A stretch of DNA of 64,000 bases from Trichosphaerium sp. ATCC 40318 (taxonomy: Eukaryota > Protista > Tubulinea), in the NCBI GenBank assembly GCA_038496445.1, contig JALMLS010000441.1, positions 1,248 through 65,247 on the forward strand. Reading direction: 5' to 3'. Positions within the stretch are counted from its first letter, which is position 1. Each line of letters begins with the position of its first letter. A program made the translations under genes and the position numbers. The notes under the pieces are model-generated. The model saw nothing but the letters and a program-made list of their open reading frames with translations, was not told the DNA's origin and did not search any database. This document shows positions 4,101 through 32,391 of this stretch, piece after piece.

Positions 4101-7100
4101 TGCAAGAAAGAGTTCAAAAAGAGCCATACTGATTGGAACAGGTTAACTAAACTCGAGTTTGCGACATACCTTGAGTACTTGCATAACACTGGAGTGCTAA
4201 TGCTAGATACTGTACGGATTAACTGTTTTGTTTTTGGTTCATCCCTCCTTCTCATTTTTTTGGTTTTAGACGACTGCTATAATTTGTACAAAGCCAGCTA
4301 TCATGTCTAAAATCTTGAGCAGTTTTATTGGACCTGATACACATATCAATCGACTTCAGGAGCAGAAAGGAGGCTGTGGTGGTATGAGGAATCCAATAGT
4401 ATCTTTAGAGGATGCTGTAAAACGTTTGCAACGTGTTCCTACTACTGATGGAGAACCATACAGCCGGCTCATTTGCTTATCGATTCTCAACTTTATGGAG
4501 CAGCTCAAGATCTGTTATATGCTGTCACCGCAAGAGGAGGTACGCTTGAAGTGATAAGAGTGGAATCGTGTACTTATTGATCGATAGATATGTTACGGAA
4601 GACCTGGATACATGTTTCCAATGCTCCGACCAAAAGCTGAAATGGCCTATCTACCTCCTGTAGTAGGTGATCGTGAGGGGTTACGTCTTTGGACGGCTAG
4701 ACTTAAGTCCAGCGAAGATGTTAGTATTACCAGCGATTTTTTTAACTCGATGCAAGTTGAACTGAGAGGTAAGCAAAAGGATTGAAAGCGTTTTTTGCAG
4801 AGATTTACTTTTTTTCCTCGCAGATTTTCACGACTTCAAGTACAAGCTTTTCTTGAACTCTATGGTCCTTGCAGATAAACAAGGTAATATGGTGTTATTA
4901 TACCACTCAGTAGATTCCATCATTATGATGGTGCGGGGTACTGATCCAACAACTTGGGTACTTCCTATTTTTCTCATTTTCGTACTCTTTTTTATTGTTC
5001 TTTTTTATTCTTAACTTTGGTTTTGTTTTAGCTTTCTACGCTATATGCATTTATTCCTCAATTGAAGAGAGCATCTTTTGATGTACTTTGTCCTTCGTGT
5101 ACGGTATCAGGGACGTTCCAGTCATTCGATAGAAGCCATGTTTGTAAATCTTCTACAACAACGCTTACAGAACAGACTGTTGATCAAGGTGTTCCTATTG
5201 AAACTCTTGAAGGAGTTGTACCTAAATTATGGAGTCCAAAAGGAGGTATTACATTGTTTTCTTTTCATACAGACTGTAGTTTAAGTCATTAATGTCGTTT
5301 CAATTAAGGCGTCTCTTTCTTTGAAAAAGGAGTATGGCAACAACAGCCTCAGTTGAAGTATACTGTTCTAGAGCAGTGTGAAGCTATAAAAGAGAGAAAA
5401 AGCGAGTACTTACGTGCTCGGGATATGTTCTACCAGTTTGTTGGTGTTGACAATGCATCATTCTTTAAGCTTGATAAGGTTGTGTTCTTTCACAATCCTA
5501 CTCTTGAAAATAAGTTTCATGCTTTTTATCAACGTGTTATATCACGTGTTGTTGACCAACATGATCCAAATGATATTGAGGATTCGACAGATGATGGTAT
5601 GTACTAGCTAACAAGGTGTGACGATGCTAAGCAAAGTTTAGGTGCAAAGAAGGCTTGGAAACAATGGTTCTTAGAAAACTTCTAACAATGCCATATTCAA
5701 ATTTTTTTTTATTTAGGATACTTGAAAAGTTAGATAGTTACGCTATGCGTGGGTCTGGGAATGAACAAGTGAATTTATTGCCAGGGTGCGTAACTTTGTT
5801 TGTCGTTTTGACTTTTTTTCTTACTTTTTTCTTTGTTTAGGTTTCATGGCACCACAGAGGTATTTTTTCGCATATTCTAAGTCTAAGAAGGCTTTACTAA
5901 TAAAGAGGTTATAGGAATCATCGTTTAAAATCGCTGAGAATAATTTTTTGGAGCCTCGAGAGCTCAACAATCAGACAGATCCTGGTTATTTTGGTACTTA
6001 ATCGGCAGAATGTCAAACATGTCACTGATAGTCTTTGGTAGGTAAAGGCATATACTTTACGCAATCGCCAACGTATGGTATGGTTATATTCTTTCAAGTT
6101 TATTCTAAGCCCTAAATCACGTGTAGGATCCAAATACGCTGAACTAAAGCAAAAGACAGGTCAACACTGTCTCCTCATATCGGTACGGCAACTTTTTCAG
6201 AAAAAACAAAAATAGACACCCTCCCTTCCCTTTCTTTGTTAATGCTGCTCTTTAGTGGTTGATTATGGGTAAACCGTATCCTGTCATTGAGACACCGGAT
6301 CCTAATGATCCAAATACGTTACTTGGAAAGCCATGCAAGGCTGGCTATGACTCTCATTATGTTGTTGTTAAAAAGGCTGGTAATGATATGATGTATATGC
6401 CATGTCGTCCTGCTGAAGAACCTGATGCAGATGAAGTTGTAGTATTCAACAAAGACCAAGTAAGAAATAGTTAAACGCACACCTTCTTGGAATTAATGGC
6501 TATTTAGATACTGCCGCGATACTTGGTGTACTACACTAGGAGTGGCACCAATACGTTTGATACATTCGAACTTAGCTGGCGAGATTGTAGAAACTTGGTT
6601 TTGTGGGTAAGTACAGCAAGAAGAGATGGTCTTGGTCCGATACTGGCCACAGTAATTGCCACGACTTTGTGTTGAACTGCTTTTTTAGGTGGATGATAAT
6701 CTAGCTGATGAGAATAAGTTCACTGTAAAAATGTTGGAGAAGGATCCTAAAGCGAGTGTCAAGGTGAGCCCCTGATATGAACATAAGTTGATTAGTAATG
6801 TATTTGTATGTAGGTCATACCCATGACGTCAATCACGGAATTGATGGCATTTTTGAAGCAGTATGCTGCCAGTAATATTAAAAAAATAAAGGTCATTACA
6901 AATCAGTACAGAGCGAATGATGGCAAGCAAGATGCTGCCAATAATCTTGTCAAGTACGTTTACCCATCAATTTTTATATGCGTTCTTGATTCAAAAAAAG
7001 AGCGCACAAAGAGCTGGTTGCTTATTTTTTTCCGTTTTTAGAGTTGTCAGGGAGAAAAAGAAGTGGAAGAAAATTCCAATATTGATATACGGCAACAATG

Positions 7101-26400: not shown

Positions 26401-27058
26401 AACAAAACTCAGTTTTTTTTTCAACTTTTTTTTTATTACTTCTAAAACTGTTTGTACTAGATCCTGATCAACGATATGCACAAAGTGGAGTATCTGGAGC
26501 AATGGGTACGTTGGAAAAGATTTATTATTCATTAGAAAGGAGGTGTAACTGAGACTTTTGCTTTTTTTTAGCGTACATGGCGCCAGAGGTCATTAAAAAG
26601 GATTCCTATGGAGTCAAGGCTGATGTTTACTCTTATGGATTGTTGGTCCAAGAGATGCATACATTGCAAACACCTTGGTTTGGCATGACTATTCATCAGC
26701 TTGTTATGGCTTTGGAGAGAAAGGAGAGGCCAAAAGTATCAACGTATGCGACAAATGTTGTTGCAAAGTTGATTACAGACTGCTGGGCTGAGGACCCTAA
26801 GGATAGACCTTCTTTTAAGAGTGTTGTTGATACACTTAAACCTTTTGTTACTATTCCTAATGGCGCACATAACCAAGAAGGTGCACTTGAGTATGATGAA
26901 GAGATTTTAGATGGTAAGCTTTTTTTTTTTTTTTTTGCGCAGAAGTTTTTATTAAATCTCTTTGCTTGCTTGCTAGTAACTTATGTTTTTTGCTCCTAGA
27001 AATGGATACAAGTATTGGTGGGTATATTAAAAAATCTGAATTTGAAGACTTGAGTTAA
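23466..27058 (+). CDS. Kelch-repeat + PB1 + TKL (Raf/MAPKKK-like) protein kinase
   Basis: Kelch: AVEYKGKLYVFSG, MYAFGG, PPAPRSQHSSVVVGDKLYIIGGYDG. PB1: IMVKC...FNYKHDDDWINLDDDNDL. Kinase: IGSGFFGKVY, VACK, LRHPNIVLFIGA, HRDLNSGNVL, KVADFGLS, YMAPE, DVYSYG, CWAEDPKDRPSF. Confidence 0.9.
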
Positions 27059-28364
27059 TGCCACGTGATAAAATAATCCATTTGTAAAAGTAGTGTATGA
27101 ACCAAAAAAAAAAAGTTGTATTTGAACCAGAATCTTGTTTTCGTTCACGGTTGTGATTTGTCAGTTTATATTTGAAACAATTCACCAGACTAAAATTCTA
27201 CTCCGTGTAAGTCTTGGGACGTATAGGTTCGGAATGAGACGATTCCGGGATTCTAGAAATGGTCTGACTTTTTGACAATATCAGCCAATCGTGGACCGGA
27301 AAAAATATTCCTGAACCGTATGCGTCTCCTCGGATATTTATCGGTGCCTAATGAAAACTTTAGTACTAATACCAGTAATAAATTATCGCTGTCTAAGGTG
27401 TTTTTAACCGAAGAAAAGATGTGCATTTATAGCGTGCAACAAGAAACGAGATTGGATCTGTGGATTTTTTTTTTCTTTCGAAGGTCATGGAAATTCGTCG
27501 TGGAGGGGAACGCTGAAAACGCCGAATAGGTCTCGGAAAACAACACGCAAACGTATGTAAATGCGATACAGATAAATAAAGGCAGTTTTGGTTAAAAAAA
27601 AACGGTTGGATTTTTGATACTATTTCTATTTATATTCAATACGCGTGGACGCAATAAAATACAGTGACGGCTCTTTTAAGAGCGTATTAGGTTCAACGAG
27701 TAATTATTTGTACACTTTCAACAACGAAAAGGCGCCCCAAAGCACAGAAACAACAAACCAATAATCGTGTTGGAGGTTTTTTTTTCAAACCGACAACCTC
27801 AGCACACAACGGGTATGTAGATAGCTACGATAGTTACAACGGTGTTCTAGGTGCCTTGAAAACTGAATATTTTCGCTATAGACCTCCAGTCTTACAACCG
27901 TGTAGCCTAATATAGCATAAAAGAAGAAAGCACTTTGAGGCACCAATCCAAAAAAACTAAAATTCTGCCAAAAAAGGCAGGTACAAAGAATTTTTGTGTG
28001 GTGTGCCCTAGAAGTCGCTTCTCTTATCCCTGTTGTCAGGTCTTCTATCACGTAACCCCTATGAAAAATGCGTTAAAAACATAGCATAGGCAGTGTTAAT
28101 CGATCTGCAGCTTGAAAGATGTGATGATGTAACTACATCATGCATTGTCGAATACTTCTATTCTGTACACCACAGCTGCTTACTGCAGTATGGTGAACAA
28201 ATGGTTCAAATTTGACGTTGCAGGACCACCAACCTGCAGAGACTACATTCAATGCATTTAGCCTCCTTGGGAACAAGACATGTCTTAAGTACCTTGGTGG
28301 GGATGAGCACACTGTACTCTACACACTTTACCACAACCAAATATTTGGTTGTGTTGTAACTGTT

Positions 28365-29062
28365 CTCTTCTATCATTATAACACCCATAGCAGGTGTAGA
28401 AATGTTAATCGAGTTCTGGGTTACAGACATAGTACCCTAACAGGTGCATGCCATCAGTTGCCTCAACATCTTTTGTGATGTAGGGGTGCTACAACTTTTA
28501 CCCACAAGGAACGGCACTTGTCCAAGTACTTATGGAGGAAAGACACCAATGTGTCAAGAGTGATGCCCTTAGTAGGCAACATTTGAAAGCACCAATGCTC
28601 TTGTTCTCTTCTAGCATTATAACACACATCCCAAAAAAGGAAAAGTGTAGAAATGCTAATCGAGTTCTGAGCAATGTTACACCAATGTGCAAGTCACATG
28701 GTTAACATTACACAAGGTATGTGTTAAAGTCCTTAATGGGCTACAACAAACCATATGAACATATAACTGACCTTTGTTCTCTTCTAACATTATAACACCC
28801 ATAGCAGGTGTAGAAATGTTAATCGAGTTCTGGAGCTAATACACAGTGTGCGCTAACTTGGATCACTTCTTCTAGCATTATAACACTTCTTCAAGGAGGT
28901 GTAGAAATGCTAATCGGGTGCTAAGCCAGGTATGCATTTACACAAGGTATGTATTGAAGTCCTCAGTGGGCAACAACTAAACTACCTGTGTATGAAAGTT
29001 ATTATCTCTTCTAGTATTATAACACTTCCCATCAAGGAGGTGTAGAAATACTAATCGAGATA
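28365..29062 (+). repeat. Five dispersed copies of the hairpin ctcttc-tagcatt-ata-acac-[variable]-gtgt-aga-aatgcta-atc-gag
   Basis: Copies at 28365-28413, 28606-28664, 28779-28827, 28864-28920 and 29003-29062. Confidence 0.9.
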
Positions 29063-29658
29063 TTGTAACACATCATTACAGTCCTTAGCATGTACAAATG
29101 TAACATGCCTGGGTGGATGAAAGGAATCAATGATTCCAACTAAGTAATTCAAGAAACTGTATGACACGTCTAGGGAACACCTAAAGGAAAGACAAGTTCT
29201 AGTACTTGGGTGGGTAACAGATGTGATGCATTGACTCAATTGACGGAAAGGCACTCAAGCCAAGTACATCAACATGAGCATGCAAGTGTTACAGCTTCAA
29301 CCTCGACAAGGAAAGGGACCAGCCGAGTACTTGAGAGGAAAGGTAATTCATACGCTGTGTAACACATCTAGGTAACACCTAAAGGAAAGACGAGTTCTAG
29401 TACTTGGGTAATAGATGTGGCTGGTCTGAATGGCAATGGCAGATTAAAGGAAAAGGCAGTCAACCCAAGTACGTTTAGGTAGTGGTACACCTTCTAACTC
29501 ATCTAGCAAAACAAGACGGAAATGGTTGGGCATTACAAAAGGTATGTAGTGAAGCCCTTATGGATGTATGACTAACCTTTATTTTATACCATAGTAGCGC
29601 ACTAAAGGATGGGAGGATCACACTTGGACAAAGGTACAGCCCGTACTGCTTACTGGCG

Positions 29659-30143
29659 TTTAGGTCAAATACAAGATGTAGGGGTTCAATGAGGAGGTAC
29701 AAGTTCATTTGCTAACTAGCTGCGCTATACACACTAATGATGAAGGTGTGTATAGCCAATTGATCCAGGGAATGCAGTTTTAGGTACTAGCACGCAAGAT
29801 GTCGGTGTTCAATGAGGAGGTGCAAGTTCATTTGCTAACTAACTGCGCTATACACACTATTGATGAAGGTGTGTATAGCTAATTGATCCAGGGATATGCA
29901 GTTTTAGGTACTAGCACACAAGATGTCGGAGTTAGTTCATTTGCTAACTTAGCTGCGCTATACACACTATTGATGAAGGTGTGTATAGCTAATTGATCCA
30001 GGGATATGCAGTTTTAGGTACTAGCACACAAGATGTAGGGGTTCAATGAGGAGGTGCAAGTTCATTTGCTAACTAACTGCGCTATACACACTAATGATGA
30101 AGGTGTGTATAGCCAATTGATCCAGGGTTATGCAGTTTTAGGT
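29659..30143 (+). repeat. Four tandem ~110-125-bp units, each with the 11-bp hairpin gctatacacac/gtgtgtatagc
   Basis: Units start near 29659, 29779, 29904 and 30014; unit 3 has an internal deletion. Confidence 0.92.
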
Positions 30144-32055
30144 GCTCATCTTGTGAGCAGATGTAGATGTCAGGTGGTTCTATTATTGGCATTAACTATA
30201 AACATGAGGGTAAGTTGTGGTGTAATTGATGGTAACTTCTGTGCAGGTTGGCTAAGAGATGTTGGCAAAGGGATACAGATTTGGGTGCAAGTGGTGGCTT
30301 AGCATAAGTACGTGTTTATTGGATGTTTAAAAGTGTATTTACTAACTGTTCTACCTTCGCAACTTGGCTTACAATAGGTAGGTACAAGGTGGGGTATAGA
30401 TTCATAGGATGGTGCGTTAGGCAGGATTCACAGGATGGATGGCTATTGGGATTGTTACACCTACTGCTCATTATACGACTGTGGTGGTATCTGGACTGTA
30501 GTCTGTTCTTCATCCTCTTAGCACATGCCAGCTGGGTCAGTTTTCACTGGTTGACCGAGTTTAACACGTGTTGAGATGACAAAGGAACAGATTACAGGGC
30601 AGTAGGTGTAACTCACAATAGGGTAGGTACAATGGGATGTGGATGCACAGGATGGGTGCAGTAGATGTAATCATTAGGTAGGTTTCACAGGTTGGCTTTG
30701 GGCGATAAGGGACGATGGCTTGCAGAACGGTACATATGTAGTGTCCTTTAATAACTTACTTTCTATTCTATATGTAGGGTTTCGCTGGTTCACACAAGGG
30801 GGTTGTTGTAATTAATAAAATCCTTTTTCTTCTTTTAATTAACATTTCACAAGTTTTCCTTTTTTTTTCTTTTCTTTCATTAGCATGCTTACCGCAGGGA
30901 CAGGCAATGTAAAGCAACTTTAAGGGCGGCATAACTAAATCAAACAAAAAACCTAAAAGTTGCTTCTTGCTATTGCATTCTGAGACTAAATACATCTATG
31001 GGCCAGTTTCAAGGCCAATCCTTGTATACTTTTTTTTTACATCTCCTAGATGACTTTATGCATCAAAAAAGTAGAGCACCACTTCGCTATCACGTGATAT
31101 TAAAACAGTTTCTAGATTTAACATAGTTACATGCTACTAGTGTCTGGGAATGAAGAAGTGAATTTGGTGCCAGGAGGTTGCTTGCTAATCGGCATTGCCT
31201 ATTGCTGAATTAACCAAACAAACTAGTATCTTCAGCCTATTGAAGTTGTATTGCTCCACATTTCTATGTTCAGTACATTGATAAACTGCTTGAAGTTTAT
31301 GATTATATTTCACATTTAGTTCACCTTTTTGTGTACTTTATTACCAACACTTCAACTCTTGAACACTATTTCCGGAATTGTTGAAGTGAGATTTGATAAC
31401 TACTGCTTTGATTGTCATGTTCAAAATAGTTTTTGAAGTGTAAGATGGTTACAAGGTGACACAAAGATTTCTTTTAACCAGTAATAGCAAAATCAAATTT
31501 CGTGCTTTTCTCGAAACTCTCAAGAAAGCGATGCTGCCCAAATGTTTTTGATTTTCCTGGTATTGATAAGGACAATTTCTTTCCCTCAAGTCCAAAAAGG
31601 ATAAACAATTGTCAAGTCAAGTTAACGCTTCAGTTTTTTTTTTTCTTTTCTCAAAATGGAAACCCACAACAGACTTATTGTTCCATTTTTTTTCAAAATT
31701 GTAGTACGGTCTCATTGCACATGTATTTTTTTTGTTGAGTAAGGAACAGTTACAGATTTATGTCGTTAACTTGACATGACTTGACAATAGTACTTCTAAC
31801 AAAACATGAGGTTTGGAAATGGATTGTTAAATAAGTAATAATCTGGGTCACAACTCCAAAGTTGAAAGTCAGTTTTCTAAGAGCTTTTGTGTTGATAACA
31901 ACCCTGACTTTGGAGGTTACAAAAAGCATTTAACCTAAATTCGGTCGTTGGCATTCCAAGCTAATTTGGCACAGCGCATTCACTTAACGGAAGTGCAATT
32001 TGTGGCAATTAAACGTAGCTTATAGACAATACTGTCCACATAGAGTACACCAAGC

Positions 32056-32391
32056 ATGCTAATATACATAAAACAGCCAACACAAACCGGGTTTGTAACT
32101 TTGGAGGTAGAGCATACGACGACCTTAGATATGCTAAAAGATATGATTTTAAACAAAACTGGTGCGTATTAAACGATAATTAGGCACATTACGCCTCTAA
32201 CGCTTTAAATAGGTATTGAAAAGGACATTCAGCGCTTGATAATGGCTGGGAAGGTCTTAGGAAACGACTCTTCGACTCTACGGGATTATAACATAAACGG
32301 AGAACAAGTCCTTCATTTACTAACTTCAGATGAACTTAACAAATCGGTACATAAAATACCTGTCTATGATCCTGCAGCTGTGCGTAACTAA
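32056..32391 (+). CDS. Ubiquitin-like protein lacking C-terminal di-Gly (2 exons; absent from ORF track)
   Basis: MLIYIKQPTQTGFVTLEVEHTTTLDMLKDMILNKT / GIEKDIQRLIMAGKVLGNDSSTLRDYNINGEQVLHLLTSDELNKSVHKIPVYDPAAVRN*; intron 32162-32212; aligns with ubiquitin TLEVE, QRLIFAGK, TLSDYNI, TLHL. Confidence 0.85.

Follow-up and report, generated by a model that had tools for sequence, protein, structure and literature searches.

What kind of locus is a stretch of about 2.7 kb that holds no gene and is assembled from four families of repeated modules? We examined such a stretch, lying approximately between positions 28060 and 30817 of a 64,000-nucleotide segment of the Trichosphaerium sp. ATCC 40318 genome (GenBank assembly GCA_038496445.1, contig JALMLS010000441.1; the whole segment is hereafter called the window, and all positions refer to it). 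Our answer, which we put forward tentatively and short of calling it probable, is that it is a lineage-specific, multi-copy non-coding RNA locus in which repeated structural and linear motifs would act as multivalent protein-binding sites. A first-pass annotation made by reading the sequence had described 2.6 kb without a gene, composed as a mosaic of four reused modules. Both descriptions are sound: all four families lie where it had placed them, far above chance, and pattern searches of all 64 kb found each module only in this region and only on the + strand (0.00-0.03 expected by chance). Covariance models built from the five hairpin rods (R1) and from the seven GAA/AGUA units (R2) recover exactly their own copies, with E values of 1e-7 to 1e-17, and across the 64 kb they detect nothing credible outside the locus.

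The absence of a gene is supported by several searches. A six-frame search of the module region found no open reading frame (ORF) longer than 88 aa, which by our estimate is about the length expected from random sequence of similar size and composition, and the best codon-usage score falls inside the range of shuffled sequences, although this classifier is weak. None of ten ORF products from the stretch is present in the protein collection by exact look-up, and two that were searched further (word-indexed search and full HMMER) have no credible relatives. We found neither an open frame nor a coding signal, spliced or unspliced, that would indicate a protein-coding gene, and a transfer RNA search of the stretch returned none. 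Known RNA families fare no better. The covariance models of Rfam 15 give 0 matches in the whole window at the gathering score; when E values up to 5 were allowed on 27700-31100, the best match was SNORA69 on the - strand, whose 27 bits fall well short of that family's gathering score (47), followed by three weaker matches, and microRNA families matched at chance level only. The first-pass statement that the element cannot be assigned to ribosomal RNA (rRNA), small nuclear RNA, signal recognition particle RNA, RNase P or a ribozyme class agrees with this outcome.

The evidence for RNA structure is strongest in the GAA/AGUA hairpins. Seven GGAA...AGTAC units between 28262 and 29480 share an invariant internal loop formed by G-GAA and AGUA-C strands, and R2 finds exactly these seven, all on the + strand, with E values of about 1e-9 to 2e-7, the next match in 64 kb being at E 2.4; the number given in the first-pass annotation is thus exact. 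On one side of the invariant loop lies an outer helix and on the other a short inner hairpin, both variable in sequence from unit to unit (AGA/UCU, GGC/GCC, GG/CC, AAGAC/GUCUU). The flanking G-C pair is present in 7/7 units, and in the inner and outer helices 86-100% of cells are paired. On the structure given by RNAalifold, 89.8% of paired cells are complementary against 74.9 +/- 3.7 in shuffled alignments, 11 cells are changed on both sides against 4.1 expected, and the covariation score is 0.558 against 0.266; none of these values was reached in any of 500 shuffles, in a test based on n=7 sequences with a structure derived from the same seven, two of which (units 3 and 6) are near-duplicates. 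Sliding the pairing partner by 1-3 columns lowers pairing to 26-51%. All seven units also have 5'-AGUA-3' opposite 5'-GAA-3' with standard pairs on both sides, so that the loop carries, at the level of sequence, the signature of the sarcin-ricin/loop-E (bulged-G) motif, and this motif makes sense only on the + strand. The first-pass claim that pairing is kept is borne out for the GAA/AGUA units, where changes fall on both sides, but not for the AAGGTATGT units, which show no covariation among themselves, nor for the tandem units, which are too similar to one another for covariation to be assessed.

The second hairpin family consists of five 59-nt units (repeat family D2) at 28361, 28602, 28775, 28866 and 29007, and its 20-nt 3' arm occurs five times at no more than one mismatch, against 0.00 expected. 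These rods share a 55-nt architecture of three helices, in which CUC is followed by a UUC/AUC 3x3 loop, seven pairs, an AUA/AGA 3x3 loop and then four to eight pairs. They had been described as covarying. The five hairpins are indeed present, but their covariation was overstated, and we find the rods to be conserved rather than covarying: 12 of the 15 pairs are invariant or changed on one side only, only two events are compensatory (copy 3 has A-U in place of G-C, at a pair where copy 1 has U.U, and copy 5 has U-A in place of C-G), and 33 of 500 shuffles match the covariation score. Altogether 97% of the rod cells are paired, including four G.U and zero A.C cells. The apical stems have unrelated sequences and nevertheless all pair, a form of support that lies outside what the alignment captures.

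How the modules multiplied is visible in the repeats themselves. Self-BLAST shows that the block 28708-28827 is duplicated to 28938-29059 at 75% identity and the block 29144-29211 to 29343-29409 at 87% identity, and the repeat search also returned a 55-nt pair. Two blocks, each made up of a rod, a AAGGTATGT unit and another rod, were aligned with each other, and their divergence is strikingly uneven: the module cores, which were picked after inspection of the data, are identical at 111 of 123 positions (90%) and the remainder at 40 of 144 (28%; Fisher P 1e-26). Neutral duplicates would be expected to accumulate differences uniformly, so the cores must have been either selected or homogenised separately from the rest; the pattern suggests constraint. 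The third family, AAGGTATGT..AAGYCCT, was likewise found as first described, with three units at 28712, 28942 and 29537 against 0.03 expected.

The 3' part of the locus is of a different kind. It opens with the four tandem units of about 120 nt that the first-pass annotation had noted; Tandem Repeats Finder confirms the array at 29702-30143, and self-BLAST gives 87-96% identity within it. Each unit, of about 117 nt, contains an invariant 12-bp hairpin with a UGAUGA-containing loop, set inside a flanking helix. We considered a box C/D small nucleolar RNA or a K-turn for these loops and rejected both, as there is no CUGA D box and UGAUGA lies in a hairpin loop, not beside a terminal stem. Spliced-leader RNA genes were rejected as well: a UUUUAG|GUAC sequence and a U-run are present, but the candidate Sm site matches poorly, the contigs reach only moderate depth, and no trans-splicing is known from Amoebozoa. 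Telomerase RNA was dismissed because the one CCCTAA, at about 28436, compares with about one expected by chance in 2.6 kb (our estimate).

Beyond the tandem array, a G/T-rich tail is dense in two short motifs. TAGGT reaches a density of 9.0 per kb on the + strand of 29600-30820, compared with 0.7 elsewhere, and GATG one of 18.8 compared with 4.3; when only the non-redundant part is counted, there are 7 copies of AGGTA where 1.5 are expected and 17 of GATG where 5.6 are expected. The enrichment of TAGGT and GATG is confined to the + strand, and the motifs could be short linear protein-binding motifs or remnants of older short repeats. Inside this transcribed tail we also observed a nearly perfect 176-nt hairpin at 30445-30620 that is absent from the first-pass annotation. 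A variant copy in the 2015 contigs still forms it (-69 against -71 kcal/mol) and includes a C-G to U.G change, and RNAfold gives nine G.U pairs and one A.C apposition on the + strand. It may be either a source of double-stranded RNA or a foldback insertion. The coordinates of all features are collected in the table.

Table. Features of the module region, in window coordinates; R1 and R2 values are matches to the rod and GAA/AGUA covariance models, respectively.
Feature	Position	Strand	Remarks
Branched structured element	28060..28260	+	-60.8 kcal/mol, z -4.2, 0/200 shuffles as good; 5' edge of module domain
GAA/AGUA unit 1	28262..28300	+	R2 E 4e-8
Perfect 22-nt palindrome	28332..28353		Self-BLAST 100% over 22 nt, E 2.4e-4
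Rod copy 1	28355..28430	+	R1 88 bits; U.U mismatch at column pair 19-61; both 3x3 loops invariant
GAA/AGUA unit 2	28500..28537	+	R2 E 1.2e-9; followed by a degenerate eighth unit, 28528-28575
Rod copy 2	28596..28681	+	-23.1 kcal/mol, z -4.4; R1 82.6 bits
AAGGTATGT unit 1	28706..28752	+	Family D4; 5'-splice-site-like sequence in hairpin loop; CTGAC, pyrimidine run and AG afterwards
Rod copy 3	28769..28844	+	Compensatory G-C to A-U
Rod copy 4	28858..28935	+	Two G.U pairs in outer helix
AAGGTATGT unit 2	28936..28982	+	Within block duplication 28708-28827 ~ 28938-29059
Rod copy 5	28996..29076	+	Fold z -5.2; compensatory C-G to U-A
Short ggaatca-a-tgattcc palindrome	29123..29137		Read from the sequence; about 0.2 such expected by chance in 2.6 kb (estimate)
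GAA/AGUA unit 3	29178..29213	+	R2 E 1.4e-9; inside duplicated block 29144-29211 ~ 29343-29409
GAA/AGUA unit 4	29237..29275	+	R2 E 1.9e-8; 35-nt match in an otherwise dissimilar 482-nt X3 contig
GAA/AGUA unit 5	29302..29338	+	R2 E 2.1e-7
GAA/AGUA unit 6	29376..29411	+	R2 E 2.6e-8; near-duplicate of unit 3
GAA/AGUA unit 7	29441..29480	+	R2 E 2.3e-7
AAGGTATGT unit 3	29531..29577	+	GACTAAC, T-rich run and ATAG afterwards
Four tandem units of 110-124 nt	29649..30146	+	Family D1; spacings 123, 110 and 124 nt; covered by contigs of X1, X2 and X3
G/T-rich tail	30147..30817	+	GC skew +0.25; dense TAGGT and GATG; contig ends at 30817 beside AATAAA (30814-30819)
Long imperfect inverted repeat (176-nt hairpin, ~61 main-axis pairs)	30445..30620	both strands fold	+ -76.6 kcal/mol, z -7.6; - -64.7 kcal/mol, z -6.3

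Three sets of assembled contigs, all of unrecorded library type, bear on transcription: X1, from a 2015 study, and X2 and X3, from a 2022 study. X1 is probably RNA, because it is small (12.7 Mb), covers the 3' end of the neighbouring kinase gene and skips intergenic DNA. In X2 and X3 the longest contigs are below 6 kb, and the flanks of the locus are uncovered. X1 covers 29621-30611, and X2 and X3 cover 29688-29909 and 30447-30817; an X2 contig runs into Illumina adapter at 30817, a shared fragment end beside the AATAAA. Several places carry two sequence variants: on 30453-30611, for instance, one contig shows 1 difference, whereas a second shows 8 substitutions plus 4 indels. The expressed variants differ by indels of 1-2 nt, and behind the tandem array the contigs also show another junction. 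An X3 contig links a partial AAGGTATGT unit to the 5' arm of a rod, followed by a loop of six letters and a 3' rod arm, at a spacing unlike that of this copy, and another holds one GAA/AGUA unit in unrelated sequence. From these rearranged copies it follows that the modules exist at other loci and in data that are probably RNA and, together with the presence of at least two variants, that the locus belongs to a multi-copy family. We conclude that the 3' part (29621-30817) is transcribed and that the locus is multi-copy, the contigs themselves being probably RNA.

Under our preferred reading, that of a multi-copy non-coding RNA locus, the element would have grown by repeated local duplication and would have two parts. 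The 5' part, approximately 28060-29600, would be an array of small hairpins, namely the seven GAA/AGUA hairpins and the five rods; the 3' part, approximately 29620-30817, would combine the four ~117-nt tandem units with a G/U-rich tail dense in UAGGU and GAUG and with the 176-nt hairpin. The + strand RNA would thus display a small repertoire of fixed structural and linear motifs, each many times over, and could serve a small set of RNA-binding proteins as a multivalent platform, scaffold or sponge. We infer the + orientation of the transcript, the continuity of the two parts in a single RNA and any binding of proteins to it. Of the first-pass proposal, selection on RNA structure finds support in the covariation of the GAA/AGUA units and in the conserved cores, whereas the scaffold or sponge role is one that we infer. 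A bolder version holds that a dispersed family of multi-kb structured RNAs represents an undescribed class of ribonucleoprotein. Each RNA would carry arrays of sarcin-ricin hairpins in permuted form and of rods with two internal loops, every module binding a protein of its own, and would in this way nucleate a large multivalent particle or condensate; we regard this as doubtful.

Several observations weigh against the reading of the locus as a multivalent non-coding RNA. No contig of X1, X2 or X3 lies on 27068-29620 (or on 30841-32000), and the single 2.6-kb RNA envisaged at first is therefore conjectural: contigs cover 29621-30817 and none covers the hairpin arrays of this copy. Nor do we read the contig ends at 29621, 30453 and 30611 as ends of an RNA. 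From each of the two starts, 29621 and 30453, it is exactly 30 nt to the first variant site, and the last variant site precedes the end at 30611 by 30 nt, so that we take these ends for branch points of the assembly graph; as this distance equals k-1, 29621 is rejected as a transcription start. That the contig sets are RNA at all is a guess. The module counts are not independent, because all copies derive from local duplications and units 3 and 6 are near-duplicates, and the rod pairs are mostly uninformative on structure, most of them being invariant. Folding excess is local and modest and shows no strand preference: in 150-nt sliding windows the mean z is -1.1 (+) and -1.5 (-) over 28100-29620 and -1.3 (+) and -2.0 (-) over 29620-30150, and about 0 in the flanks and, the long inverted repeat excepted, in 30150-30800. 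The five rods fold equally on both strands (sums of -98.6 and -100.5 kcal/mol), and the suggestion that G-U pairs favour the + strand is correspondingly weak. In the long hairpin, aligning arm against arm gives G.T and A.C appositions in equal number (4 and 4), and because of this balance the hairpin may be an inverted repeat that is decaying as DNA and not a helix under selection in RNA. Finally, our searches of metagenome, viral, phage and protein collections found no homologue outside this genome, so that all the covariation seen is among copies within it. Metagenome contigs scanned for the module patterns returned nothing, the phage collection gave no match, and viral contigs gave nothing apart from matches to a loose GAA/AGUA pattern; these numbered more than 113, all single and by our estimate about the number expected by chance, and R2 found no array in 80 such loci. 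A literature search for comparable RNAs yielded nothing specific.

The multi-copy nature of the locus also invites a different explanation, in which it is a non-autonomous transposable element or satellite-like repeat of about 1.2 to 3 kb with copies at several loci, with hairpins and repeats that matter at the DNA level and transcription that is incidental or driven by the element. The contigs fit this, in that 29621-30611 is found in two or more diverged variants, the tandem array is followed by an alternative junction, and a AAGGTATGT/rod copy is rearranged. It is also in keeping with the internal tandem repeats, the 176-nt inverted repeat and the terminal AATAAA, all common in such elements, and with the balanced mismatches of the long inverted repeat. 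We nevertheless consider it rather unlikely. The repeat search and self-BLAST on 27000-31500 found internal repeats only, and at the borders neither a target-site duplication nor terminal repeats, be they inverted, direct or of the LTR type (a 93% pair of 14 nt at 28229/30238 is at chance level by our estimate); there is no transposase or reverse-transcriptase ORF nearby; and self-BLAST, R1 and R2 found no module copy or fragment elsewhere in the 64-kb window. Neutral copies, moreover, should not diverge so differently in cores and spacers, and helices that covary round an invariant internal loop are unexpected for DNA repeats. The first-pass annotation had named a match to a known transposon or satellite as grounds for refutation; no terminal repeats were detected, but a rearranged multi-copy family leaves room for a mobile or satellite origin, and this too counts against our reading.

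Other functions can be imagined for the individual modules. The rods and the 176-nt hairpin could be Dicer substrates within a polycistronic precursor of microRNA-like or small interfering RNAs, as the rod arms are about 21 nt long and both conserved between variable loops and flanks, and as X2 contig depth peaks over the 3' arm of the long hairpin. Yet 6 of the approximately 21 arm positions lie in the two 3x3 loops, leaving 15 pairs, and large internal loops in the arms make poor substrates for known Dicer enzymes. The GAA/AGUA hairpins, with only 2-5 plus 5 bp and non-conserved stems, cannot be precursors, and the microRNA matches in Rfam are at chance level, so that we hold this explanation to be unlikely. 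It is quite improbable, in our view, that the 5' array is instead cis-regulatory DNA, a cluster of protein-binding sites upstream of an RNA gene at 29620-30817. This would account for contigs that cover the 3' part only, for conserved 20-nt cores among free spacers, as in homotypic binding-site clusters, and for a TATA-like run at 29580-29589; compensatory changes on both arms and covarying helices are unexpected for DNA sites, however, and the X3 contig carrying rod and AAGGTATGT modules of another copy places these modules in probable RNA. Lastly, the AAGGTATGT units could be 5' splice sites of a spliced transcript. A branch-point-like CTRAC (CTGAC, CTAAAC or GACTAAC) follows all three units at 40-60 nt, then a pyrimidine run and AG, in an overlap with the 5' arm of the rod that follows, so that this arm doubles as pyrimidine tract. 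The intron-like spans after the units are 28717-28803, 28947-29019 and 29542-29596 (52-87 nt), sizes that agree with the Trichosphaerium mean of 75 nt (PMC10521059) and with the introns of the neighbouring kinase gene. Against this, AG is missing from 2 of the 5 rod 5' arms, genuine introns nearby are far more T-rich, no reading frame emerges and the coding signal is not above that of shuffles. The contigs contain no splice joints, though they do not cover the AAGGTATGT spans either. We find splicing barely credible.

If the locus does give rise to one transcript or a transcript family, it would be a tractable repeat-modular RNA that arose independently of the animal cases. Internal-loop motifs preserved through many copies, amid helices and spacers that change, are a rare sign, obtained from sequence only, of selection on RNA shape in a protist; to our knowledge, long or structured non-coding RNAs in Amoebozoa are barely known outside Dictyostelium. 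If it proves to be a mobile element, it would still be a new repeat family to mask in annotating this genome.

The setting of the locus is that of a gene-dense, intron-rich eukaryotic genome. The window has a G+C content of about 36-41% and contains a tyrosine-kinase-like kinase, MORN-variant and F-box/LRR genes and a ubiquitin-like exon. Its composition and gene content agree with the published draft genome of Trichosphaerium, which has 37.7% G+C, a mean intron of 75 nt and a mean exon of 154 nt and is enriched in MORN and F-box genes (PMC10521059). The kinase gene lies directly upstream of the modules and has six short introns with 5' ends GTAAGT, GTACGT or GTAAGA and 3' ends YAG; an X1 contig stops on its 3' end at 27067 with zero mismatches. 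As the next recognisable + strand coding exon begins near 32040, the module region sits in a gene-free gap of about 4.8 kb. The next gene downstream, on the same strand as the modules, encodes a ubiquitin-like domain in two open segments at 32044-32388 (+).

Smaller features were observed at the edges of the module domain. On the 5' side, a structured stretch (27851-28060, z -2.8 to -3.8) and a partial fourth AAGGTATGT-like unit (27806-27820, 87% identical to 29535-29549) precede the start first given for the element, and because of them the module domain may begin near 27800. Just beyond the 3' end, 30838-30865 on the - strand is an inverted partial copy of rod copy 2, matching its apex and 3' arm (82% over 28 nt), and R1 has a weak match at 30860-30935 (17.9 bits, E 0.15). 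A small separate hairpin occupies 30898-30977 in the downstream spacer, with arms 30912-30925 and 30952-30965 that are 93% complementary and a chance-level mir-365 match. Further downstream, the 52 nt at 31123-31174 are 79% identical to 5734-5785 in a Roco gene region (E 6e-7) and may be a short dispersed repeat. Within the locus, the palindrome at 28332-28353 reported earlier is perfect over its 22 nt and the ggaatc/gattcc pairing at 29123 is present in the sequence, but the proposed gttgcct/aggcaac stem is a 7-bp match between arms 110 nt apart, at chance level.

Comparison with known systems places these modules near several of them without full agreement with any. The GAA/AGUA units resemble the sarcin-ricin/loop-E motifs of rRNAs and 5S rRNA in their G-GAA and AGUA-C strands, flanked by Watson-Crick pairs in all seven units. 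Unlike in the ribosomal sarcin-ricin loop, the hairpin here closes on the GAA-to-AGUA side, in the opposite orientation, and there is no GAGA tetraloop; this likeness is one of primary sequence. The 3' side of unit 3 (29198-29213, UAGUACUUGGGUGGG) resembles loop E/helix IV of eukaryotic 5S rRNA, but no rRNA or 5S model matches the units, and a 5S origin is no more than a lead. Like clustered microRNA-like hairpins, the rods are five paralogous hairpins at one locus with near-invariant arms of about 21 nt and variable loops; they differ in having two 3x3 internal loops per arm and in standing among module families of another kind. With non-autonomous elements of the MITE, SINE or LARD type the locus shares its multiple copies, non-coding nature, internal tandem repeats, long inverted repeat and transcription, whereas the lack of detected terminal repeats and target-site duplication, the uneven conservation along its units and its covarying helices set it apart. 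Xist with its A-F repeats, the roX RNAs with their roX-box stem-loops and NORAD are repeat-modular long non-coding RNAs. Our locus has no sequence relationship to them, belongs to a different eukaryotic supergroup, appears to be multi-copy and has contigs on its 3' part only; what it shares with them is a multi-kb, ORF-free organization in several short repeat families, with conserved cores between free spacers, some hairpins and presumed multivalent protein binding.

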